Made by a program: the position numbers and the translations under genes. The notes beneath the pieces are model-generated. The model saw only the letters and a program-made list of their open reading frames with translations. It was not told the DNA's origin and did no database searches. Positions 7,313 to 30,693 of a stretch of DNA of 64,000 bases are shown piece after piece. The DNA is from Magallana gigas. Its lineage: Eukaryota. How positions within the stretch are numbered: position 1 is the stretch's first letter; each line of letters opens with the position of its first letter. The stretch spans positions 11,532,001 to 11,596,000 of the forward strand of contig NC_088857.1 of the NCBI RefSeq assembly GCF_963853765.1, in the 5' to 3' direction.

Positions 7313-10300
7313 TCAGAAACTCCATTCCTCTGTCACATTCATCTGCTCCATCGAGTTTATCACAGAATCTACTGCTTTATCTACAAAAGATGGCAGAATA
7401 CAGTGAATTATTACAGGAATTTTAGAGCTTTCTTTTCACTTTTTAAATTTCATTCACTGAAATGTGAACAAACTGTAAAGGTAAATACAAGTATATGATG
7501 CATACCACGGATGACAAGGGTATCTCAACTGTTTACAGTACATGTACTTTTAAACTAATGATAGAGTTATCCTATTTTATTGAAGTCAGAAATGGTAAAA
7601 TACATGTATTCGGTCAATACAAAACCCTTAACTTTTATCGTACTAACCATAAGAAACATGGCCAAAGAAGCCAACATACCATAAAATACATTGGCTAGAT
7701 TAGCCAGGTTTATTGGAATCAATGTAAGAGAAATTATGACACCCCTCTTCTTACTGTACTTACAGTCAGAAACATTGGCAAGGTTAGCCAGGTTTATTGG
7801 AATCGATGTAAGAGAAATTATGATGCCCTCTCTTCTTACTGTACTTACCGTCAGAAACATTGGATAGGTTAGCCAGGTTTATTGGAATCAATGTAAGAGA
7901 AATTATGATGCCCTCTCATCTTACTGCACCTACCATAAGAAACATTGGCTAGGATAGCCAGGTTTATTGGAATCAATGTAAGAGAAATTATGATGCCCTC
8001 TCGTCTTACTGTACTTACCGTCAGAAACATTGGCTAGGTTAGCCAGGTTTATTGGAATCGATGTAAGAGAAATTATGATACCCTCTCGTCTTACTGTACT
8101 TACCGTCAGAGACATTGGATAGGTTAGCCAGGTTTATTGGAATCAATGTAAGAGAAATTATGATGCCCTCTCATCTTACTGCACCTACCATCAGAAACAT
8201 TGGCTAGGTAAGCCAGGTTTATTGGAATCAATGTAAGAGAAATTATGATGCCCTCTCGTCTTACTGTACTTACCGTCAGAAACATTGGCTAGGTTAGCCA
8301 GGTTTATTGGAATCAATGTAAGAGAAATTATGATACCCTCTTGTCTTACTGTACTTACCGTCAGAAACATTGGCTAGGTTAGCCAGGTTTATTGGCGTCA
8401 GTGGCTGTAGGAGATTTGGCAGTGCCTCTGAGGACCTCTTCTTCAGGTGTTTAAACATTGGGTCTGATAACAAGCCCTCCGCTGATGGTCTGAAGAAAAT
8501 TTAGATATACTAATGAAAATGTACAAAGTAAATTTTTGTAGCTGCCCCTCTTGATGGAAGTTTTTGTGAACAAGACCCCAATTAGACATTTTGTATATCA
8601 GTATGATGGTTATTTATAAAACTCAGTTATAAATGAAAACAGTTCATAAGTTACTGATAGAAAGATCTTGTGTGTGTGTGTGTTGACTCCTCCAAAATTT
8701 CAAGAATAGAAGACACCGTAATGAATATTCAAACACATTAACCATACAAATAAATCAAAACCATGGAGAACTCAAATGTTGTACGTGTATCTGAATTAAA
8801 TTTTAATCTTACACAGTAACATGGCCTACATTTACCATGAAATAGCACACATCAGGTAGATTTCCTGATTCATACCTGCACTTTGGATTCTTCTCTAAAC
8901 ACCTGTCAATCAAGCTATGGAAATGGGAGGAGAATTTACGAGCCTTTGCTAAGGCAACAATATCAATTCCGCCATTCTCCAGCTCCGCATTGTGTTGAGC
9001 TGTAAATGTAAAAAGCAAGACAAGGAATAATTTAACAGCCACTCCCAACTTTAGAATCAATAAAGGCGGCACTAATTGATACATGTATCTATTCAATAAA
9101 GTACTACCGGTAGTAACAAAATTATTTCATCAAAGGCCAGTGTGAATTTCTATTGAGTAAGTAAAAATAGCTCACTGCACTATTTAATTACAATATTTCC
9201 TTTTTTTCGTGGAAAAATGGGGAAAATATGTAGCAATTTTAATTTTTGTGATTTTATGAGTTTCTTATAGAAAATACATGTAATACACAATATAATTTCT
9301 GAATATTCAGTATTTTGCGATTTGAAAGAGATCGCAAATGAAGCAAAAATTAGATCATTGCGAAAATTACTGGATATACAGTGTTATGTGTGAAGCCTTA
9401 GACTTGATGGAGGCCATGATTTTAATGACATACCATGCTCCTCTCCAGTGAGGTCTGAGATGGTTGTACAGTCCAGCAGCATTGGCTTAGTACCATTCAC
9501 TTTCTCAAGCAGCATCTATTCAAATATACAGCATATATATATATACATCCTAAATATAGTACAATTATTTTAAAGGGTGATGTATCTCAAACATGTTACA
9601 AACCTGAGTCACTGGCATGTCCTCAAACGGAGGATAGCCATTGGCCAGCTCCCAACTTGTGATTCCGAGGCTGTATATGTCTGATTTTGTGTCATATCCT
9701 GACAAATTCTAAAACAAAAATAAAATAATGTTAAAAACAGAATAATGTAGTTTTGTGTCATATCCTGACAAATTCTAAAACAAAAAAAGAGTAATACATG
9801 TATTAAAAACAGTTAAATAAATTAATGTTGTTTTGTATCACATCCAGACAAACTCTAAAACAAAAATAGAATAATATTATAAAAAAGTCAATAAATGTAG
9901 TTTTTGTGCATTAATAGAATAAATGTACTGCATACTGTTTTGAGGATTCATGAATTGGTCAACAGTGGCCTTACTCGTAAAATTGGTCATACTTCTCACT
10001 TTATTGAGCACATAGTGTTATACATCAACTCAATAACAAAATCCATGAAAGAAAATTACCAGTGTTCAATGAAAAATGATAAATCTACAGTACATGTATA
10101 TGAATTAATAAATTCATGGATTCTATTTAGTGTGTGTGATTGAGATGTTTTTACCTGCTCAAGGATTTCTGGACTGAGCCACTGCAAGTCGGCACTACAG
10201 GCCTCGGGGTAGTTATGAACCTGGTTCCACTTCCTGCCATGATGGAACATGTGGTAGACTTTGCGTAGGCCTGATAAACACACACTGCCATTGCCACCAA

Positions 10301-17502: not shown

Positions 17503-20500
17503 TCAATCAGTGTCCATGGTTTCTTCTTTTTTCTCTCCCTTATCATCCTTCTTTTTCTGCTGTTCCTGCATAGCCTTCACAAATGCATCAAGATCTGTAG
17601 AAGAAAGAACATCCATAATTATCAAAACAAACTTTGCATTTAGGGGGGGGGGGGGGGGGTGTTGATCAACATTTTATTAATAGGATCACTGAAGCATGAC
17701 TGACCTCCCTCGGCAGCAGCATTAGCTACATCCTCTCCTAGGTCAAACTGTGACATCAGGGGGCCCAACTGACCAGACTGCAAGGCAGCACTGAACGATG
17801 ACAGTGCCTGTAAACATAATTAAAACAGTAAGGTCTCCACGGCATTCAGTATCTACACATACTTAATTTACATATACCAGTAATTGTAGCAACATTGAAA
17901 ATCTTCGTTAAAAGTTCAGAGTTTGGCAATGAACATCAGTTTTCATAGCATGTGCAAAAGCTCACAGGCTAACAGGTAAGTGAAGAAAAGAAGAATCAAA
18001 TGATTAGCATGTAAATTAAGAAATCTTTGTGGGTTATGTGTTATTTCTTAATTAATCTTTGCAAAGGGATTTGTGAGCAATTGGCTGCTTAAGTTTTGTG
18101 CATAATACTAGATATAAAACTACTTAATATCAACAAATTGAAAAATATAACTACATGTATTGCTATATGACATCAATCTCTGCCTAAAGTAAACCTTGTT
18201 AATTGTTGCATTTTTATGTACCGTAACTTTGACTGAATAAAACATTTGCTTTTTGCTCATCTCAACATTATTACAACATATCAGAAATACACATACTTGT
18301 ATTTCAAGAGAAAGTACAGAGCTTTTAAATTTTTATCTTAACATCTGCTGGAATATACAGGTAGGTGAGTATGTGTGTTTTGAAAGGCAGAGAGGTTTTC
18401 TCACTAGAATGTCTGAGAACACCTAGTCCTTTACCTGCTGAAACTGTGGGGATTGCACAGTGTTACGTAGCTCTCCCTCAGTTTTGGGGAGGGACTCGCC
18501 CTCCGGCAGGAACTTGATTAGTCGCTCCTGAACGTCCTTGTTGGCCAGTATGGGGATCATCGACTCAGGGTTCAGAGCACTCACCAGGTCAATCTCTAAA
18601 AGGGATCAATGCAACATCAGTAACTGCACATACTGACTGTCAGTCTACCACTTTGTTAGGTAGAAGAGTTATGAAATAATTTTGCTTACAACTTACTATA
18701 ATTTCAATTTATAATTTTAGGACTGATATCCCTTTTTGGTAGCCTGAATTTTTTTCATTGTCAACGAAAATTGTTTTAACATTATTGGGTAGTATACAGT
18801 AATAAAGATCATATTTTGTAGTACTTACGGTCTTTGGAAGGTCCTGATGGAACTGAAATTAAAATCAAACTTAATGTATTAAAAGCAAAAAATCTGCTTT
18901 AAACTGTGTAAAATATCAAATACATAACTTATTGGCTGTTTAGGTGGAAAAAAGACAACAAAATTCCATTTCCTTAGTCCAAATGTTATGTTCAGCTATT
19001 GAGGATAAACAATTTCCCTTGACTGGAGCACTTAGGGGAGATACAAGAAGTAAACAATAGTCATGAACATTCTGAGCAATCATTACTGACCATTCATGGT
19101 AGACAGGATGTTCTGTAGGTCACTCAGACGGATGGCCTGCCTCGGGGTAGTGGTCCCCGCTGCAGGGGGCTGGGATGCAGTTGTTGTGGGTGTCTGGGAG
19201 GGTAAGGCCGCTGCAGTCACCGGTCTCTGGGAGGTTTCTGATGTCCCGCCACTTCCTCTCGTTCCCGGGGATGACTGCACTCTCATAGGCCTAAAAACAC
19301 ATCATTATTCCATAAATATGAGGTGTTCACATAAATTGTAACATTCATCCAAAGACATGATGGCATATTATATGTAGTAAATTTTTAAAAATATTGATTT
19401 ATATTTTGTTGAAGATAAGAAAAGCCATGGATTCATTCTAAAATTTTCTGACCCACAGACTGAACTTTGTATATCATTTTCTGATATGGTAGACTGAGTA
19501 TACACACAGTAAATATCTTTTATTTTTGATATGGTAGACAGACCCCATTTAATACTTACGGTTCTGATGCAGTTGACTGGGCACTGCTTGGTCTTCCTCC
19601 CATCAGGGCAGACAGACCCCCACCTGGTCCTCCCATTCCGATACCACCTACAGGTACAAACACATGCTAGGTACTCAAACAGTGACAGCGCATCAAGTTA
19701 ATGATAAGTAATAAAATCATGTAAAAATAATCAAATAGCAAACTCAAAATCAAGTTGATGAGAGAAAATATTATCCTTGAAGGTTTCTCACCAATAAGCT
19801 GCATAAACTGTTGCTGACTCATTCCTCCAAGGATGTTCTGTAAATCCTGGTCACCTGGAGAAAAAAAATTCATGTAAAACAGATTCTCCAATCATCTCTC
19901 ATTGTTAAATACTTCTTAAATATCAAGTGTTTTCATTAAACCTGTACAAAATAATTGACAAATGGAAACCCTGTCTTGAAGTGAGTCTAAAACTGCCTAC
20001 CCAGTCCACTGAGCTCTGAGGGGAGCCCCGAGGCTAGTCCGCCTCCTCTACTGGAACCAGGGGTTGGGGGGTTGTTCAGGCTGTCATTGACCTTCTTACA
20101 GAACTCCTCATCCTTGTCAGTCTTCGGTTCCTGAAAGAAATAATATGCATTGATTTCAATAATTCTAAAGTAAAGAGCTCCTGAATTACTTATTTGAAGA
20201 GACTTTCAGAACACCATATTTAAGTTTTCAATCTGCTAAAATATAACAGCATTAGATTGTGAATTAGTTTTGTATTCTATTGGTCAGTGAACCAGATCTT
20301 TACTCACCTGCATCCAGAAGAAGAATTTCCGTGCAGGCGACTTGAACTTTAGTACATAGACTCGCCCAGTGGTGCATTGTGGTACAAGTTTAAATTCTGT
20401 GTCCTCTGGAAATATGATTAAATCCTGCAAAAAGAAAAACAAAACAATACATGAGTTTAAAAAGCAGCTTTAGTCTGTCCCAAGTTATTGCTTCCATCGC

Positions 20501-21510
20501 TTTTTGATGATTTTTAATAAAATTACACATTCATGTGAAAGAAATACAGTTGAAATCGTTAAAAGGGAATATATAAAAGATATCTTCATTGAACAATTAT
20601 CCCTTTTCACTCATAAAATTTCACAGGAATGAAAACAATTCTCTTACGGAGATTTATAATGGGAAATGTTTAAATCTTTTCTCCATTCGGAAGTACTCGG
20701 GATGCCTTGCGCAATTTTTTAACGTTATTATCCGGGCTTATTAATGGCTGATGCAATGCAAAATCTCCATATAGACTTACAATTTTGGGATAAGAGGGGG
20801 CGTTTCAAAACAGATAATCTGGACATTTTACATATTAGTGAATGAACGCAGTTTGAGCACAAAGGTATTTACTATTATTGAAATATCAGGCAAAAAGTGG
20901 TGGAAGCAAAAACTCAGACGGAGTATACAAAATCAAGTAAATTTAAAGGACTAAGTTAAACATGTAACGCAACAAGGAATTTATCAAACTCCAAAATCTT
21001 ATCTCTCACCTTCGAGTTTTGCTGAGAAATTTTAATTAAAATTCATCTTATTTCCATAAATTGGGTACAACACCATTATATAGCTTACTGCTAATTGGTA
21101 GCAAACCATCATCTCATTTCCATAATAAAGAAAGAAATATTCTATTCATATTAGTTTACCTTAATCTAACATTAGCGTTATTCGCGTGACAATTATTCCT
21201 GCAGATACTCTTGCATTTACACTTTATAATAAATTTGTTGATTTGAAAGTTAGGAAGTTAAAAAATATACGACAGAGGAAATTCGGTACGATGACAAATC
21301 AAAAATGCTTACATCCTCAACGGTTCCGTTCGTACGGTCTTTCCAACAGAAGTGCATCAGAGCATCGTCCGACTGGTAGACGTATACCATTCCCTTCCTC
21401 TTGTCAGGATGGACCATTTTACCCTTCATAAACATTTTACCGGCCCTGAATTCGACCAGATTTTTACTCTGGGAACGCCCGGTACTGCCAAACAATGCTC
21501 CTGAAGCCAT
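17503..21510 (-). CDS. ADRM1: Proteasomal ubiquitin receptor ADRM1/Rpn13, 10 coding exons
   Basis: Exons 21313-21510, 20308-20424, 20001-20130, 19792-19854, 19560-19647, 19091-19290, 18829-18852, 18435-18595, 17705-17807 and 17503-17594 splice in frame. Pru domain LVEFRAGKM…[28 protein letters not shown]…DLIIFPED…[11 protein letters not shown]…FFWMQEP; C-terminal [33 protein letters not shown]. Confidence 0.97.
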
Positions 21511-21609
21511 TTTTTCTTCGAAAAGTGTAGAGGCCGGTTCGATTTGCTCTTCTAAATACCGAAGAAGAGTCTTCCGCTTTAAGAAAACGTGTTCGTTTTA
21601 TCTAAAACT

Positions 21610-21617
21610 ACTTCCGG
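21610..21617 (+). promoter_or_regulatory. ETS-type motif (ACTTCCGG) in the transposon left end, between the ADRM1 and Myb start codons
   Basis: Exact ACTTCCGG. A mirror copy (CCGGAAGT, 26854-26861) lies upstream of the transposase ATG. Function is inferred only. Confidence 0.4.
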
Positions 21618-21667
21618 TAGATCTTCTGCCTCTTCCATCCCGCGAGCAGAAGAGACTGGAAAACAAT

Positions 21668-23792
21668 ATGGCGGATGATGGCGGGTAAGTAAAATTATGA
21701 AAAGATTTTCAAAAATGTTTATTATTAGTAGTAGTTAATCGGATAAAATTATCAACAATATGTATAAAATATGCATTAGTAATGTCAAAAAGATAATTAA
21801 CAGATTAATAAAGTATTTTAAGGTAGCAGTTAACCAGTTAACGTGGTTTATAAAAAGGGTTTCAAGTTTTGGCATGAGTGGAAAGTACAGCGAATGCGTG
21901 TATCGTTTAAATTATTGCTATGTTAATGCATTTGATTTAATGATTTTATTTTTTATAGATTCACGAATGTCAACGTTACTTTGGGGAACGGAAAACTTGT
22001 ATCTGTCCAAGTATCGCCAGAGTTGTTTGGGCACTTTACCTCATCAGGTTTTTATTCTTTAGCATACAATTAACGTGAACACATTTTTAAACATTACACA
22101 TGCATGTTTATTATAATACCTTATACCTATAATACTTGTATCTACAGGCACGTAGCATCGTTTTTGAAAGTGGGGGGGGGGGCAGACTCATCCAAAAAAT
22201 CATGACAAGCAAAAAAAAAAAAAAGAAAAAAAAAGGGAATTTTTTAAGTTTCCCAAAATCTTCAAATTCCTAATCCGGGGGGGGGGGGGGGGGGGGGGGA
22301 GGGGCTGGTGTAGTATAGCCTATAACTTCAATTTCACTTCTTATTTCCTTATTTTCAATTTTATTTTTTACATACTCCCAAAAAAGTGTGGGGGGGGGGC
22401 CAAAAATTGTTCCTGCGAGAAAAAGTGGGGGGGGGGGGGGCCAGGCCCCCCCTGATGCTACGCGCCTGATCTATTATAGATGTAATGTTAAGAAACAATT
22501 CTTACAATTAGAACTAATTCTACAAATTAAATAATAATTTAATATTTATTTTTTTATTAAGTTAATTTGTATTCATTTGTTATATAGAATATATATTTTT
22601 ATAACAGATCCTGATTTAAAACAGTTGGCTAAACAACTCATCATACAAGCAGCTATGGAGAAAGATAGTGAAGCAGAATGTGAAGAATTGCCAGGTATTT
22701 TTTCAGACATTATTTCTCCTTAAGTTTATAAAAAGGCATACTATCCTAAAGTCTGTCTCAAGATATTTTTGCCACACATTTTCTAAAATTATTCTATATC
22801 AAAATTCTTAAATTTTAATTTTATTTAATATTTTATTTATAAATACCTTTGGATTCAAATGATGTTCATTCAATAGCATGAAAAATCCAAAGATTTTCCC
22901 TTTAAATGCCCCCTCTACCTTGTCAGATTTCAATACACAGCTACATGTACAAATTAAAGGTCTACAGGGATTTTGAATTGCAAAAGAGATAAAAATACCC
23001 TGATCGTATATCATTGAAAAATTGTGCAAGGTAGTCCGAGTTAAACTTCCAAATGGAGAAAAGGTGTCAACATTTCCCATTATAAATCTCTGTAACAAAT
23101 CTGTTTTCAGTTTTTTAACTGATTTTTCTCTTGTCATTTTTGTAGACATTCCAACTGTTCCACAGACCCCAGAGAATTCACCGAAGCCTACACCATCAGG
23201 CATTTTTACATATGAACAAACTATCTTTTTAATTTCTGCCTACAAGGAGAGAAAAGAAAAGTTCTTATCACCCACTCACAAGAAAAAAGCACTGTGGCTA
23301 GAAATCACAGAAGAGTTAAACAAATGTTTTAAAACTGAGTTCACTGTGGCCCAAGTTGAAGGCAGATGGAAAACACAACTTAGTGCGTACAAGAGGCATC
23401 AAACCGACCAGGCTAAGTCAGGGAATGAAAGGAAAGAATTTCTGTATGAAGAGGAATTCCAGGATATCTTCAGTGATCGACATGATATAAATCCAAAGTT
23501 TGTGGTTTCATCTTTATCCTCAAGCTCAGATAGTGGAAGTTTCACTCAAGATGAGCCCTGCACAAGCTCAAGTTCTGGTGAGCCAGCAGGTATCACAGAT
23601 CCCCAGCCCAAAAAGAAAAGGAAAATTTCTTCCAGATCTAATTCTTCTCAAGTTATCCATTTTTTGGAAGATTATGTTGAAAATCAAAATAAAAAAAATG
23701 AAGAAAATATGAAAAAAATTGAGAAAATGCATGAGGAGAAAATGAAAATATTTAGTGGTTTCCTCTCAGTTTTTAAGAGTATGAAAGATTAA
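21668..23792 (+). CDS. Harbinger Myb/SANT(MADF)-like DNA-binding protein, 4 exons, 279 aa
   Basis: Exons 21668-21684, 21959-22047, 22608-22694 and 23146-23792 have phases 2/1/1 and total 840 nt; the exon 2 donor (GTTTTT) is weak. Trihelix/Myb-like segment FTYEQTIFLISAYKERKEKFLSPTHKKKALWLEITEELNKCFKTEFTVAQVEGRWKTQLSAYKR, then an S-rich linker, a PKKKRK NLS-like motif and a coiled-coil C-terminus. Confidence 0.85.
22145..22468. mobile_element. Poly-G/poly-A-rich MITE nested in intron 2 of the Harbinger Myb gene
   Basis: TIRs CAGGCACGTAGCATC / GATGCTACGCGCCTG (1 mismatch), with the direct repeat ATCTA on both sides. Confidence 0.8.
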
Positions 23793-24073
23793 AATATTCA
23801 TGTCTTCAAATCTCTGTTAAGCATTGAAATGTAGGTCTATGAATTCTGATGTAATGTTTTGATTTGTTTCTGCTTTATATGGTCTTTTTCCATCATGCTG
23901 TTTTCAAATATGGTATTTCATATTGATTTTCCAAACTTGTTGTATTTTTTAATTGATGTTTAGTTATTCACCAGTAACTGACTTTCCATTTCAAGATTTG
24001 AAAATTATCTGTAATTTATAGAACTGCTATGTTGGGTGCAACAATTTGATGTGTTTACTATTTTCTTTTACAG

Positions 24074-24759
24074 GATATGCATATTTATGCCACTTGCCTC
24101 CAGAAATAATATGCAAAATATTGACATACATTCCAATTCCAGAGTTGTACCATTCTGTATCTAAAGTTTGCAGTTCCATGAATTGTCTTTTTAAGAGTGG
24201 CCTTGTATGGAATTCAATAACTGACTTGAATTTTTTCAATGAAGGAATGAAAGATATATTCACTGTAGAATTTTTGAAACTTTTTGGAAATTGTGTTAAC
24301 CTTACCATGGATGCAACACTTCTGCAAGATTGTGATTTTTTGGGTAGTTTCAAAAATTTGAAATGTTTGGATATCAGGGGTTCCAAAAACGAAAATATTT
24401 GCAATGAAAACATTGTTAAAAATTTATCTAAGTGCAGATCTATGGAGAAACTCTTCATTAGCAGTTTGCCAAACTTGAGTGATGATGGTCTGTTGTTATT
24501 ATCTAAGGAGATGGGGGGAACACTGCAGTATTTACAAATTCGTAACTCTGCAGAGATCAGGCCAGAAACTTTTCAGGTTTTGATGAAAAATCTAAAGTGT
24601 ATTAAGGCCATCAGTGTGACTCCTTCTGGAGATTATGAAAAGTGGGCAAAAGTTCTAAATGAAAATGCTGTAAGGTGCAGTTTTGGGCATGAAATTCTTG
24701 ATTTTGTTCCAAAGCGATATCTTGTATATGACAGAATGTTTTACTCTCTGTTGCCCTAA
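24074..24759 (+). CDS. F-box plus leucine-rich-repeat (FBXL-like) exon inside the Harbinger element
   Basis: Stop-free frame 24046-24759. F-box-like LCHLPPEIICKILTYIPIPELYHSVSKVCSSMNCL, then LRR-like repeats (NLKCLDIRGS, SMEKLFISSLPNLSDDGL, TLQYLQIRNSAEI, CIKAISV). A strong acceptor TTTTCTTTTACAG ends at 24073; an in-frame ATG at 24049 is an alternative start. Confidence 0.8.
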
Positions 24760-25217
24760 ATGATTGTTAAAAATTGTCTGTGGAAGTTGAAGTGTGATTT
24801 AACATGCCCTTTAGTGGGCTTTTTCAGTCGCTGTATGTGAATATGTATGCGAGATTCAAGCGATATTCTTTATTTTTTAAATGCTAATTAAGCCAATATG
24901 TGATTTGTTTTTCCATAATATTGATCTCAGGTGGTTTTTAAAAAATATATTTATGTTTATAAGCATCAAGAAGATGATTGTTTTGAATAATACATTTATT
25001 ATATGTTTTTTATATAATAAAACAGTTTTTTACATGAATAAGATATGCATTGCTTTATTTTAAAAGAAGAATACACTTTGGTTTGTTCCATTAATTAATC
25101 CAATGTGTGAAAATGATTCAGAAAAAATTTCTAACACAACGTATACCAAATTTTCATTGCCAAACTGATTTCTTTTACATATATATGGTTAATTTTAAGT
25201 ACCGGTACATGCAGATT

Positions 25218-26814
25218 TTAGGTGATAGCCAACTGTCGTGTAAGTAATTGTCTCTTTAACTGTCCTTCTGCATCATTTTCAAACATTGGAATAATTAAAG
25301 GAACCTGCTGAGGGTCATTGTCAAAATGCTCATCAAGTTCGTCTTGGTTCAGGATACAAATGTTATGTAGGATGCAAGCTGTTATAATAGCCTTGACAAC
25401 ATAAGAAATGTCATTCATTTCAACAAATTGGAGACGCCGAAATCTGCCTTTCAATATGCCGAATGAATTTTCGATGATTACTCTGGTACTTGATAAAATC
25501 TGGTTGAACTTAATTTGATCCCTAGTAAGGTTTCCTCTATTTCTGTATGGAGTAATCAGCCACCGCTTGCACGGATATGCCCCATCACCTAACAAATGGC
25601 ACTGACCACAAAGAATTGGGCCTCTTTGCCTCAATGGAGAATTTTGAAAAACACGAGCATCATGCACTCGTCCTGGCCATCCACAGAAAATGTCTGTAAA
25701 TCTTTTATCTCCTCTGCACACTGCTTGAAGAATGACAGAGTGAAATTTTTTCCTATTAAAATAATCATTTGAATGTCCACTAGGGGGTTTAATGCGTATA
25801 TGTGTAGAGTCGATTGCTCCAATCACACCAGGGAAGTTCTTTTTTATCTCAAATTCATTGTTTACAGTCTGCAAATCATTTGGCCAAATCACAAATTTTT
25901 GAAGAAAGTATTTTTGGAAACATCTAACAACCTTCTGTTGTGGGAATGGAATGTCGATTCAGATACATTAAATCGATCTGCAATTGACCGAATTGTTTCT
26001 TGTGATCCTATGTACCACAGCATCATCAGTAAATCTTTTTCATGTGAAATTTGAGGTCGTCCAGCAGCTGGTTCTCTTAGTAGTAGTTCTGGAATATGCT
26101 GAATATTTTCCAATATAGCTTCGAATGTAGTTTTTGAAACACGAAAGAAGGTCTTGAATGTGTCTAAGGAATATCTTGAAACAACATCTTGCACAAAGCG
26201 TTCCACTTTATATCGTTTTCTTTGCTCCTGTCTGAAAACAAAGTTATTAATTAATTAAATTTTAATAAATTCTTGCATATTGATAGATTGTTGAATATCT
26301 TCAAATAATTTTTGTAGGAATTAGCAGAAATGTAATTTAACATTAGGTGCTATGATGACAAGCCTTAATAAATTTATGACATAGAAGTACAGGCATGTAG
26401 CATCAGGGGAAATCAGTGAAATTTAAGTTATAGGTAAACTTGCCCCCCCCCCCCCCCCCCGGATTATTATTTTAAGATTTTTGGATGACGATGCCCCCCC
26501 CCCCCCCCCCCCCCCGACTTTCAAAAACGATGTACGTGCCTGAATTATTTATAATTCAAATCAGATAAAGATAAGGTGATTCATAATATTGTGTATGTTA
26601 TTCCTTGTATTTTTTAAATGTAGACTACACATGAAAGCATTAACAATCGCTATGATGTGTGAATAAAAAGCATATAAAATTACTAAGTCCCTTACATATC
26701 ACTGCAAGCTGCAAATAGTGTAACAAATGAAAATTCTTCATCTGGCAAGTCAAAGTCTTCATCCTCAGTCATTATAATTATTGCAGCGCTAACTAAACAT
26801 CGTTTCGACGCCAT
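25218..26814 (-). pseudogene. HARBI1-like DDE transposase (DDE_Tnp_4), 2 exons, one 1-bp frameshift in this sequence
   Basis: Exon 1 is 26696-26814 (MASKRCLV…, GTAAG donor) and exon 2 is 25218-26231. HTH region (LWYIGSQETIRSIADRFNVSEST) and catalytic motifs GAIDSTHI, LLGDGAYP, RVIIENSFGILKGRFRRL and LHNICI are present. The spliced length is 1133 nt; adding one T to the run at 25918-25920 gives a 377-aa ORF (LLDVFQKYFLQKFVIWPND). Confidence 0.88.
26390..26542. mobile_element. Short MITE of the same family as 22145-22468, opposite orientation, in the transposase intron
   Basis: TIRs CAGGCATGTAGCATC / GATGTACGTGCCTG. The reverse complement begins CAGGCACGTACATCGTTTTTGAAAGT, matching the 22145 copy. 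Flanks AAGTA / AATTA. Confidence 0.75.
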
Positions 26815-28750
26815 ATTGAATCAGAAGATCACTGTTCGATTTAGCAAGAGAAACCGGAAGTTGAAAGATGACATTTTCCTCTTCTAGGAGGTGCAAATCG
26901 AACCGGCCTTAGAAGGGTAAAGTTAGAGAGTTTCCGATCTTTATATATTTTTTTTGTTAACTTGTACCAATAACGATTCGCGGCGCTGAGTAGTTACGAT
27001 TGTTTATGAGTCAAGTTTGGATGACTTCATCGAAGCTGTGTGTTCTCTCCTTGTCACATGCTAAATTCAGCATCCAAATTCCTCACAGTTGTTTAGAGCA
27101 ATTAAGAGTTCCCAGCAATTAAGAGTCCGAATGAAGTTCTAATATTAGAAGATTTTCTATGGTGTCATACTTTTTTTCATGTATTTAATGTCCGTGTGGG
27201 CGTTCCCTTAGTCAACTAGCTCTTAATCACATTATTTTATACTTTCTTTAAGCCCAACTTTATTGGAATTGAGACAGAAATCTTGAACGGTGGTTAACCC
27301 AGTCACAAACAGTTCAATTACGCAACGATTCTGCTTAGTTAAGCAGTTAACTTTTTGCATAACTGACCTTTTTATGAAGAACTGTAAAAACATATCTACC
27401 TGTACAATAAGATACAAGACATTGCATACTCATTAACTATATAAAATCTTGATTTTTCAACGTGCATGCAGCTAGCCTCAGCGATGCGAAAACGTGCAAC
27501 CTGTTAACATATTAAAATTAAAACTCAGCTTCTTTTTTACACATTCAATTTTTCTCTCTGAATATACCAATTTAAGGACTAGGGAATCATTCTTTGACTT
27601 TTATGAGGTAATCATTACAGTCGGGACCTTGATCAAATAAAAAAAAAAGCCAAAGAAAACGTATTTGAAATATTTTAAAGTTCCAAATGTTGAACAGATT
27701 GTAAGAGCAGTACGAATAGATAATGTCCCCCGAGAAGAGTTTGAGTGTTTGAAACAATTTTTGACCATATAAACGAATACATTAAAAGTTTTTCTTTATG
27801 AGACCTCATTTCACGAAGAGGACTCTTAACCCTCCCCCAAAAAGTACTTATGATCTTTTCAACAGTAAATGTTGATCACGATCACATGTGTCGGTCAATT
27901 ATCAGCTTATATTTGTTTTGTTAAAAAAAATCTTGAATCGCATCTGTCCTCCTATTTAGAGTTTTTAAAAAGAGACCCGCTCTTTCCATATTTTAAGCAT
28001 TCGCATGTTACAAAAGTATAATAAAAATAACCAATATCATTTATTCACATTTATTCGAATATCACGAAAAGTAAGTTGATGTTGACACCCATTAAGACAA
28101 CAAAATACAATATACATCCAAAATGTTACTGTTTGCAGTCTATATAGGCCATGTTTACACCAATCACATAGACATATTTGAAAGTTATGTAAATGGGGGT
28201 GGGGGCTACTTAAAGCCATTTGCCATGCAAAAAATTAAAATGAATAAACAAACAAACTACATGTACTTCACCTAGCCTCAAATAATTTTAATCCGTCGTT
28301 GTGGTGGGGGGCTCCCAAGACGCCCCCCCCTTTTGTCACGTTTCTAAAAAAATAAAGTGCTGTCATTTCAATTCATTCTAAAATTTTAATCAGTCCTCGA
28401 TTGTTTTGTTCAGGTATTGCCGCTAGCTGCTGCAGGTTACTGAGTGTGTGGCCACTGGGTGGTGAGATGTCAGGACAGCTCTCAATGTGTTCTTGAGACA
28501 ATAATCAATGGTAGAAAGACACACCCTATTTGGCAGAAATGTCGAAAAGAATAAACATGCCATCATAACACGATCCCGAACCATTAAAGACGTTGGTGAT
28601 TTTATTTTTCTTTGTGTCTTTTTATTTATTTATTTATTTATTTATTTGTTTGTTTTTTAATTGCTTCTTCAGCTTGATAAGTACATGTGCATACATTACA
28701 AGACTATATAATGTCTTAAATTTAATCGGTATGGTTGTATGTATTTTTAA

Positions 28751-29907
28751 TTACATAAATTGTAGGTCAGTTAACCACTTCCTCTGTCCGCGTGACCTCG
28801 TGTGACGACGGCTGGGTCTCCACAGTGGATGCCCGGAGTCGGCGGGAATTATCCCTGTCGAGTGGTGATTGGGTTTCCGGAGAAAGATGGCGGCAAATAC
28901 CCGCTCCCTGACTTTGTCAGTCAGCGCACAATACAGGATAAAGTTGGCAAAACCTTGGGAACTATCTCCGACTCCCTGAAAAAAACAACAGCATTTCGTC
29001 ATTAGCTGGAGTGTAAAGTGATGTCAACCATATTTGTTCATTAAAGTAATTGAGCTTATGACTAATGGTACATGGTGAGTTACAGTACTGTGTGTAATTC
29101 ATTATTTTTATGCCACTCGTTTCTCATGTAAATCTGTTTCATACAGAAAATACATCAATTATACACATTTCATACAACCATCTGTTGCTGTGGTATAATA
29201 TGTTTAGGTACTCGACGCATTTTCAAGAATCCTCGATCGGGCGCTAAATTCTCGACGTATAACTGCTTTATACTATAAATCGTTTAATACAGGTTATATG
29301 CGTTCTACATAAGACCTAACATGGAGAATAGAGTACATGTATATTGACAGTAGTTCAATCTAATTTCAAAGGTATTTACAAGTCGTAATTTAGACATTTG
29401 CTAATGACGACCAAAACATATATTTCAATGCTAGTGCAAGTATCTGCTCAACAACGTTTAGCTTGGACGCCTAATCTACGTCGACATCGTAATGACGTCA
29501 TCTTACCCGCTGGGTTACTACTTGACGTTACAGCATTTACAACTTCTAAATATAATTAGTTAATTTGGTAAAACGGGTTCTTCAGAAATAAGTATTTTGT
29601 GTCACTAAGTCCTTGTAAAAGAAGATGGGTTTTGATCAAAACTCTGTATTTGTTTTGGCAAGATGTCTGGCATTTTATACATGTATAGACAACGAACTTG
29701 AGTTAAACGAATAAGTTTAAAGTAGCTGACCTGTAGGTAAGTGATCCAGGGGGCGTCGTAGTGAGCCAGGCTCCCCATGAGGAAGCGGAGGGTACCCCAC
29801 ACCCGCAGGACGATGAACACTACGGGGACAAAGGTCAACTTCAGGTTGGCTTCCTGTAACGCAGCCTTTCTGGACTTCTTCTTACTCACCGCCAAGCTTT
29901 TGCTTGC
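28751..29907 (-). CDS. GPR157: GPR157-like (cAMP-receptor-like family) GPCR, TM6-TM7 and C-tail exons only
   Basis: Exon 29731-29907 encodes EANLKLTFVPVVFIVLRVWGTLRF and exon 28751-28975 encodes GVGDSSQGFANFILYC. These resemble GPR157 TM6/TM7 (ADKKLVLIPLIFIGLRVWSTVRF; GIGNTFQGGANCIMF, recalled from memory). Upstream exons not found; an extra terminal exon near 28425-28527 is possible. Confidence 0.7.
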
Positions 29908-30693
29908 CTAGAAATTATACATTGTACATAAAGATTATTTTGTGTCCCTTCGAGAACCTTTCACGTATTAGAAAACAGATAATTTACCAATATCCACCTA
30001 TTTAGACCTCTGCTTGATACGCACACAGTCGAACACCATCGGTAGCAAACGGCACGGTAGATCTGTTTTACGGTGGTCTCTTCGTGCACAGGCAACTGAC
30101 GTAATATATTTTTCTCATGATAAAGATATATAAAATACATGATTACTATCTTGAAATATAAGCTTTATTTGGGCGAAGGTAAGAAAACGTGACAGAGCGC
30201 GAGGCTTGGCAATCCTTCTTCAGGTTTTCGACTCGAGCCCAAATATCGCTTTTATTTCAAGGCAATTGTCATTTATTTTGTTTATCCTGCAACAAAATAT
30301 CACATTTTGCGCCTAAAATGAGCTTTATTCGACAAATTTCGGTGTATTTTTGCAGTTGAAACTATGACGCCATGGCGTACAAACGAAGCAAGAAAGATGG
30401 CGTACGTCACATTGCATTTGACGTCGGTTAAATGCACGAGGCTTGACCGAATATAGCTTTGGTTTATTGGGTTAGCCTACCTTTATTCGGTCAGTGCAAG
30501 GGGAAGTGGCAGGATAAATACTCTCTACCTAATAATACAGTGTACACAAGGTGTTTTATTAAGTGAGGCATATTTTTTATTATGAGTCAAATATATAACG
30601 TCAGGTGCTTGTGTTGTTGCGATACCTAAGAACGAACGGATATGGAAATGAATATTTCCGGAACTCATAGTCTGAGCAGAGCGGACAATAAAC

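Follow-up and report, generated by a model that had tools for sequence, protein, structure and literature searches.

We analysed a stretch of 64,000 nucleotides from Magallana gigas (assembly GCF_963853765.1, contig NC_088857.1, positions 11,532,001 to 11,596,000 of the forward strand; hereafter the window, in whose numbering all positions are given), and found a DNA transposon of the PIF/Harbinger type directly upstream of the start codon of ADRM1/Rpn13, a single-copy proteasome gene. The insertion is real and of the cut-and-paste kind: a young, low-copy element has entered the 5' untranslated region (5'UTR) of ADRM1 and has physically cut off the coding region from its own start sites and promoter, which now lie 5.4 kb away. 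With a probability of about 0.6, we infer from this an effect on expression that makes the assembled haplotype hypomorphic or null, carried heterozygously.

The insertion site is composed of the following parts.

21511 to 21527, minus strand: remnant of the native leader, 17 nt, still joined to the ADRM1 ATG (matches other alleles)
21528 to 21530, strandless: left copy of the target-site duplication (TSD), TAG, or CTA on the gene strand (read from the sequence)
21531 to 26909, plus strand: PIF/Harbinger DNA transposon, 5,379 bp (ends set by comparison with a second copy, on C10, and by empty sites)
21531 to 21552, plus strand: left terminal inverted repeat (TIR), 22 nt, AGGCCGGTTCGATTTGCTCTTC (inverted-repeat pairing, 91% complementary)
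26888 to 26909, minus strand: right TIR, 22 nt (pairing with the left TIR)
26910 to 26912, strandless: right copy of the TSD, TAG (read from the sequence)

The ADRM1 start codon occupies 21510-21508 on the minus strand, and 20 nt separate it from the start of the transposon. The 17-nt remnant is identical to the final 17 nt of the 5'UTR in most other alleles, with single-nucleotide polymorphisms (SNPs) in a few. The genome holds one other full copy of the element (C10:36338906-36344121, 98% identical) and a degraded one on C4. In both full copies the TIRs are complementary at the same 20 of 22 positions, the homology between the copies is bounded exactly by the TIR tips, AGGCCGG... and ...CCGGCCT, and the C10 copy carries a 3-bp duplication of its own, GAT. 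Because an independent, 98% identical copy ends at the same tips with its own TSD, the boundaries of the insertion are far beyond chance.

The site is uninterrupted in all other oyster data that we inspected. We compared four public runs (X4 and X11, DNA; X15, an RNA library; X21, stranded polyA RNA) with positions 21250-27200. The DNA contigs of X4 and X11 pass directly from 21528 to 26911, leaving out 5,382 nt, and three letters at the joint match either side; the depth at this joint is 116.7 versus 135.5 in the flank for X4, and 18.4 versus 18.4 for X11. The joint is the empty site with the target triplet in single copy. An exact look-up of the exon-1 open reading frame (ORF) returned ten genomic contigs (L016-L025) from ten different runs, and all ten are empty, reading ...AACTTTACCCTT-CTA/CTT-CACTTTTCGAAGAAAAAATGG and collinear with the window from 26911 upward and from 21531 downward. 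The target triplet is polymorphic among them (CTA in 3/10, CTT in 7/10), and the element entered a CTA haplotype. The reference chromosome of C. angulata (GCA_025612915.2, L026) also has the empty site, and seven of ten spliced ADRM1 mRNA contigs that we collected via an exact protein match cross it collinearly (L027, L029, L032-L036).

The empty site is the common allele in M. gigas and C. angulata. When the joined pattern was sought within the same assembly there was no match, so that no alternate haplotype is represented there. The initial annotation had placed the ADRM1 ATG, the TSD and the insertion correctly on the sequence, to which the second TAG at 26910-26912 and the 22-nt TIRs can be added, and the empty site that it had reconstructed is present verbatim in DNA and mRNA contigs of other animals. 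It had further proposed that the finding would fall if empty alleles did not join 21530 to 26913. They do join these positions, and since the X4 and X11 joints, the ten contigs and the C. angulata reference are all empty, the finding survives this test.

It is extremely improbable that a mis-join in the assembly put the transposon at ADRM1 and that the animal really has an empty site. Although neither junction is bridged by a read or contig from outside the assembly, as such an artefact would allow, a mis-join would not produce two perfect copies of a 3-bp sequence that the empty alleles carry once, nor would it stop exactly at both TIR tips. The copy is no duplicate of the C10 copy either, from which it is distinguished by 48 substitutions and several indels, and the flanks of the insertion are single-copy.

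The mRNA contigs locate the part of the gene that now lies on the far side of the element.

26926 to 26933, minus strand: cluster of native ADRM1 mRNA 5' ends, -34 to -41 in empty alleles (mRNA contig ends and adapter fusions)
26950 to 26990, minus strand: displaced proximal promoter block, with an inverted CCAAT at 26967-26971 and a CpG patch at 26974-26986 (haplotype comparison)

Three of the mRNA contigs start at -41 (L033), -36 (L035) and -34 (L034) relative to the ATG, and in two more an Illumina adapter is fused at -34 (L027) and -38 (L036). These five ends are independent of one another and span 8 nt, lying 17-24 nt outside the right TIR. One further contig extends to -76 (window 26968), and one is unspliced across 680 nt upstream. 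That the cluster marks the start sites is a good inference, though contigs cannot prove a start. With native 5' ends at -34 to -41, the element therefore lies inside the ADRM1 5'UTR, about 15-22 nt downstream of the presumed start sites. The native promoter now faces the right end of the element, in sense orientation to the transposase gene, the ATG of which lies 95 nt in from the element's end.

The CCAAT box and the CpG patch that the initial annotation had reported beyond the right TIR are both present, and they are invariant in 10 of 11 gigas/angulata haplotypes. Its view that the native promoter lies beyond the right TIR is borne out by the spliced mRNAs of other animals, which are collinear across the empty site and have their 5' ends at 26926-26933, but needs correcting in one respect, as the element sits within the 5'UTR and not between the promoter and the start site. 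For a promoter footprint across species, the upstream region is alignable only within gigas/angulata, and conservation is uninformative either way.

The region upstream of ADRM1 differs between haplotypes in other ways as well. The assembled haplotype lacks 27 bp of the proximal promoter (AGCTCTCAAAAAAATAATTTTTAAAAT, flanked by AGC microhomology) at about 26985-26988, a stretch that is present in 10/10 other contigs and in C. angulata. Conversely, one of the empty contigs (L017:1536-1818) and C. angulata (L026, about 9630-9900) carry an unrelated stretch of ~283 nt at window 26987/26999, some 100-110 nt ahead of the ADRM1 ATG. A search of this genome with the 283-nt sequence gave no match, and it is not a repeat family of this assembly. 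To judge from these sequences, the ADRM1 upstream region is structurally very polymorphic.

Downstream of the insertion, the gene itself is intact.

17503 to 21510, minus strand: ADRM1/Rpn13 coding region, 10 exons, 391 aa, intact (GT/AG splicing, protein identity)
21313 to 21510, minus strand: coding part of ADRM1 exon 1, encoding the N-terminus of Pru, with a donor GT at 21312-21311 (Pfam match)

Spliced at GT/AG, the ten exons in the window give a 391-aa protein identical to M. gigas XP_011425386.2, the cluster of which carries PF04683 (Pru) and PF16550 (RPN13_C); one residue differs in the C. angulata protein. The exon-1 ORF matches Rpn13_ADRM1_Pru (PF04683) at E 2.7e-15, the exon layout agrees with mRNA contigs L027-L036, and an RNA contig in X15 covers 21312-21490 at a depth of 287. 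We considered compensation by an ADRM1 paralog, which is ruled out by the presence of the Pru domain at only one locus in the genome.

The genes of the element now stand between promoter and coding region. Within its 5,379 bp the element has three reading frames, Myb/SANT-like (plus strand), F-box/LRR (plus strand) and transposase (minus strand), and two short subterminal motifs.

21610 to 21617, minus strand: subterminal CCGGAAGT (ETS-type motif), facing outward to ADRM1, 100-107 nt upstream of the ADRM1 ATG (motif scan)
21668 to 21684, plus strand: putative first exon of the Myb/SANT-like gene, MADDGG, with a GTAAGT donor (sequence)
23111 to 23792, plus strand: Myb/SANT-like ORF, predicted Harbinger accessory protein (weak Pfam match and Atlas neighbours)
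24049 to 24759, plus strand: F-box/LRR (FBXL-like) ORF, uninterrupted, between the Myb-like gene and the transposase (Pfam, Atlas; counterpart in the C10 copy, L002:3121-3828)
25218 to 26231, minus strand: transposase exon 2, with helix-turn-helix (HTH) and DDE_Tnp_4 (Pfam)
26232 to 26695, minus strand: transposase intron, GTAAGG...TTTCAG (X15 RNA contig joint 26231 to 26696)
26696 to 26814, minus strand: transposase exon 1, ATG at 26814 (in-frame join to exon 2)
26854 to 26861, plus strand: mirror-image subterminal CCGGAAGT at the right end (motif scan)

We propose that transcripts from the native promoter would begin with about 20 nt of ADRM1 leader and pass through the right TIR into the transposase gene, where they would use the transposase intron and mostly end at the transposase 3' end. 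Read-through to ADRM1 would require 5.4 kb across three genes, and it is for this reason that little canonical ADRM1 mRNA is expected; the haplotype may yield none at all. The allele would persist through heterozygous carriage, as is usual for the many hemizygous transposable element (TE) insertions of oysters. In C. gigas, 62% of heterozygous deletions are TE-related (bioRxiv 10.64898/2026.02.10.705023). Adrm1 +/- mice have the weight of wild-type animals and survive, and -/- mice die within a day of birth (PMC4519129). By analogy, a heterozygous carrier of the oyster insertion is expected to be healthy. The copy at ADRM1 may still be open to excision in trans, by intact transposase from its sister copies.

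The initial annotation had left three outcomes side by side: a null or hypomorphic allele, rescue by an outward promoter in the element, and removal of the element from the leader by splicing. Indirect evidence favours the first and is compatible with the second, and clean splicing-out is unlikely. For an outward promoter the left end of the element, that is, the promoter region of the Myb-like gene, would have to fire both ways; transcripts starting 20-100 nt inside the left TIR would then read into ADRM1, and the allele would be functional under transposon control. We regard this promoter replacement as a tentative possibility. The ATG at 21668, which is followed by the GTAAGT donor, lies head-to-head with the ADRM1 ATG at a distance of 158 nt. 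On the ADRM1 strand a perfect CCGGAAGT is found at 21617-21610, no ATG occurs between 21635 and the start codon, and in O. edulis and S. echinata a CTTCCGG precedes the ADRM1 ATG by about 50-65 nt. The motif CCGGAAGT occurs in the window only at the two subterminal sites, which precede the start codons of the neighbouring element genes by 40-50 nt; a role as promoter elements is conceivable, but they may instead bind transposition proteins. An RNA contig from X15 runs across the left end of a different copy into the adjoining sequence, but it is unstranded and may represent read-through or DNA. Against an active left-end promoter, the stranded polyA RNA of X21 (about 1% of the run was read) has zero coverage at 21648-22045 on both strands, so that in this sample, at that depth, the Myb promoter is weak or silent. 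In the furthest-reaching version of promoter replacement, the allele would be fully functional through an outward-firing ETS-type promoter with an ATG-free leader and the old ADRM1 promoter would drive the transposase, amounting to a reciprocal promoter swap that segregates; we consider this rather unlikely.

Splicing could restore a near-normal mRNA if transcripts that start at the native promoter, or in exons further upstream, skipped the 5.4 kb and used an acceptor immediately ahead of the ATG. An AG does lie at 21517-21516 (TTTTCGAAG/AAAAAATG), in the short stretch from the insertion point to the ATG; in mRNA contig L031, upstream sequence is joined at precisely 21515; and the element contains a working donor on the same strand at 26696/26695. 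However, the native leader ahead of the element is only about 15-22 nt long and has no donor, and the branch-point-like CTCTAAC and the pyrimidine tract are now 5.4 kb away from the AG at 21517-21516. Use of the transposase donor would be predicted to put the transposase ATG and an out-of-frame upstream ORF before ADRM1. The junction of L031 lacks a GT donor and that of a second contig, L030, lacks both GT and AG, so that both look chimeric. Taken together with the evidence for it, splicing-out is very unlikely, and a hypomorphic or null haplotype remains the reading that we prefer.

The two contigs deserve a separate description. L030 and L031 fuse the last exon or 3'UTR of an upstream 7tm_2 G-protein-coupled receptor (GPCR) gene (28413-29910, same strand, stop at 28751) to the ADRM1 leader, and they are probably chimeric contigs or template switches. 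We rejected the acceptor at 21515 as proof of splicing-out, as L030 and L031 join the GPCR exon to the leader without GT/AG. L037, a separate contig with a different N-terminus, was discarded as a form of the ADRM1 transcript, being a trans-chimera with C3:23240988.

The copy at ADRM1 has features of its own. At positions 21700 and 21869, X4, X11 and X15 show only the other letter, and these SNPs are private to the ADRM1 copy. At 25917 it has three A residues, a 1-nt deletion relative to the four found in the C10 copy, the X15 and X11 copies, a contig of X4 and ten further population contigs. The deletion shifts the transposase frame, and the product of the ADRM1 copy stops past the HTH, after ...RRLLDVSKNTFFKNL, whereas the C10 copy reads through; the transposase of the C10 copy is uninterrupted once the RNA-defined intron is removed. 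Exact look-ups of four ORFs specific to the ADRM1 copy (the ORF spanning the left junction, the left-end SNP ORF, the frameshifted transposase ORF and the copy-specific F-box ORF) found no record, while a control look-up of the C10-type F-box ORF returned 215 blocks of public assemblies, always beside the transposase. Among metagenome contigs, the filled left junction had no match either, and the right junction is spanned by no ORF. On account of the private SNPs, and of copy-specific ORFs that have no record, compared with 215 blocks for the C10 type, the copy is rare and possibly private to the assembled haplotype.

The family as a whole is still mobile in M. gigas. The X15 RNA library holds a copy of the element with different flanks and the duplication CGA, and these flanks, when joined, have a single perfect match in this genome, at C6:4861028-4861060 (L042), where the site is empty and the triplet occurs once. 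Because the X15 copy thus occupies a site that is empty here, presence and absence are reciprocally polymorphic between genomes. Mobility is concluded from this precise presence/absence (filled here and empty elsewhere, and vice versa).

Several considerations weigh against the reading of a rare haplotype with reduced or abolished ADRM1 expression. Outward transcription could be supported by two features of the left end, the ETS-type motif at a distance of 100 nt from the ATG and a run of 125 nt in which no ATG occurs. The frameshift lies in a homopolymer, so that an assembly error is possible. Rarity may be overstated, as the data searched may exclude the runs of the assembled animal itself, and the contigs examined were the longest ones, which biases against filled alleles. 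Lastly, the filled junctions have no independent support outside the assembly.

PIF/Harbinger elements are characterized by a DDE transposase, a Myb/SANT-like DNA-binding partner, TIRs and a 3-bp TSD (PMC2213677). The element described here resembles them in its DDE_Tnp_4 transposase, a convergent, putative second gene of Myb/SANT-like type, short TIRs and 3-bp duplications, and in being low-copy and polymorphic for presence and absence, as expected for cut-and-paste transposition. The transposase matches DDE_Tnp_4 (PF13359) at E 3.2e-35 over all 158 profile positions. The Myb/SANT-like ORF matches Pfam Myb_DNA-bind_5 at E 0.009 and 16.4 bits, which is under the 21.7-bit cut-off, and its nearest Atlas clusters, found as language-model neighbours, are Myb_DNA-bind_4 at 0.95 (199/256 features). 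The putative exon 1 of this gene is compatible with only one in-frame acceptor, at 23111, and no spliced RNA for this model was seen in the RNA data examined. The element departs from known PIF/Harbinger transposons in its TSDs, which at three sites (TAG at ADRM1, GAT at C10 and CGA at X15/C6) deviate from the usual preference for TWA, and in the presence of a third frame, F-box/LRR, which is expressed; the frameshift in the transposase of the ADRM1 copy is a further difference. The F-box/LRR ORF matches Pfam F-box-like at E 5e-7 and Atlas FBXL clusters at 0.96, and it is covered by plus-strand polyA RNA in X21.

Nested in the element, in inverted orientation, is a high-copy repeat that contains long runs of poly-G/poly-C; it lies at 22145-22450, in the intron of the Myb gene, and at 26381-26542, in that of the transposase. 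Its matches in the genome, at 75-88%, number in the hundreds, and 151 bp of the repeat (22300-22450) are missing from the C10 copy.

DNA transposons that sit in 5' leaders or promoters are classical sources of alleles, as with the P-element of Drosophila and Mu/Ds of maize, and some of these alleles are read out from the element end. The oyster insertion is like them in its position between the start sites and the ATG and in the outcomes that can be envisaged (null, hypomorph, read-out, splicing). It also resembles the hemizygous TE polymorphisms described in oysters (bioRxiv 10.64898/2026.02.10.705023), being a kilobase-scale TE insertion that the assembled haplotype has and that other individuals and the sister species lack. 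It differs from these in its target, the 5'UTR of a proteasome gene that is both housekeeping and single-copy, at 17-20 nt from the start codon; insertions at such a position are expected to be selected against. Among oyster TE polymorphisms it is ordinary in kind but notable in position.

What sets the insertion apart is this position in the leader of a single-copy proteasome gene, together with a head-to-head layout that hands a housekeeping promoter to a transposase gene; on the side of the element, it is the expressed F-box/LRR frame, the non-TWA targets and the current mobility. Users of the reference assembly should be aware that its ADRM1 5' end is a rare allele, and that RNA-seq of other animals will mimic a 5.4-kb non-canonical 'intron' at this locus. 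For the biology of the oyster, the locus offers a clean natural insertion allele with fully defined limits, in a species that carries a very heavy load of segregating TEs and recessive deleterious alleles. If carriers are found, they would provide a test of what a 5.4-kb transposon placed 15-22 nt past the start site does to a housekeeping gene (loss, read-out or splicing), and of whether such alleles add to the genetic load seen in oyster crosses.

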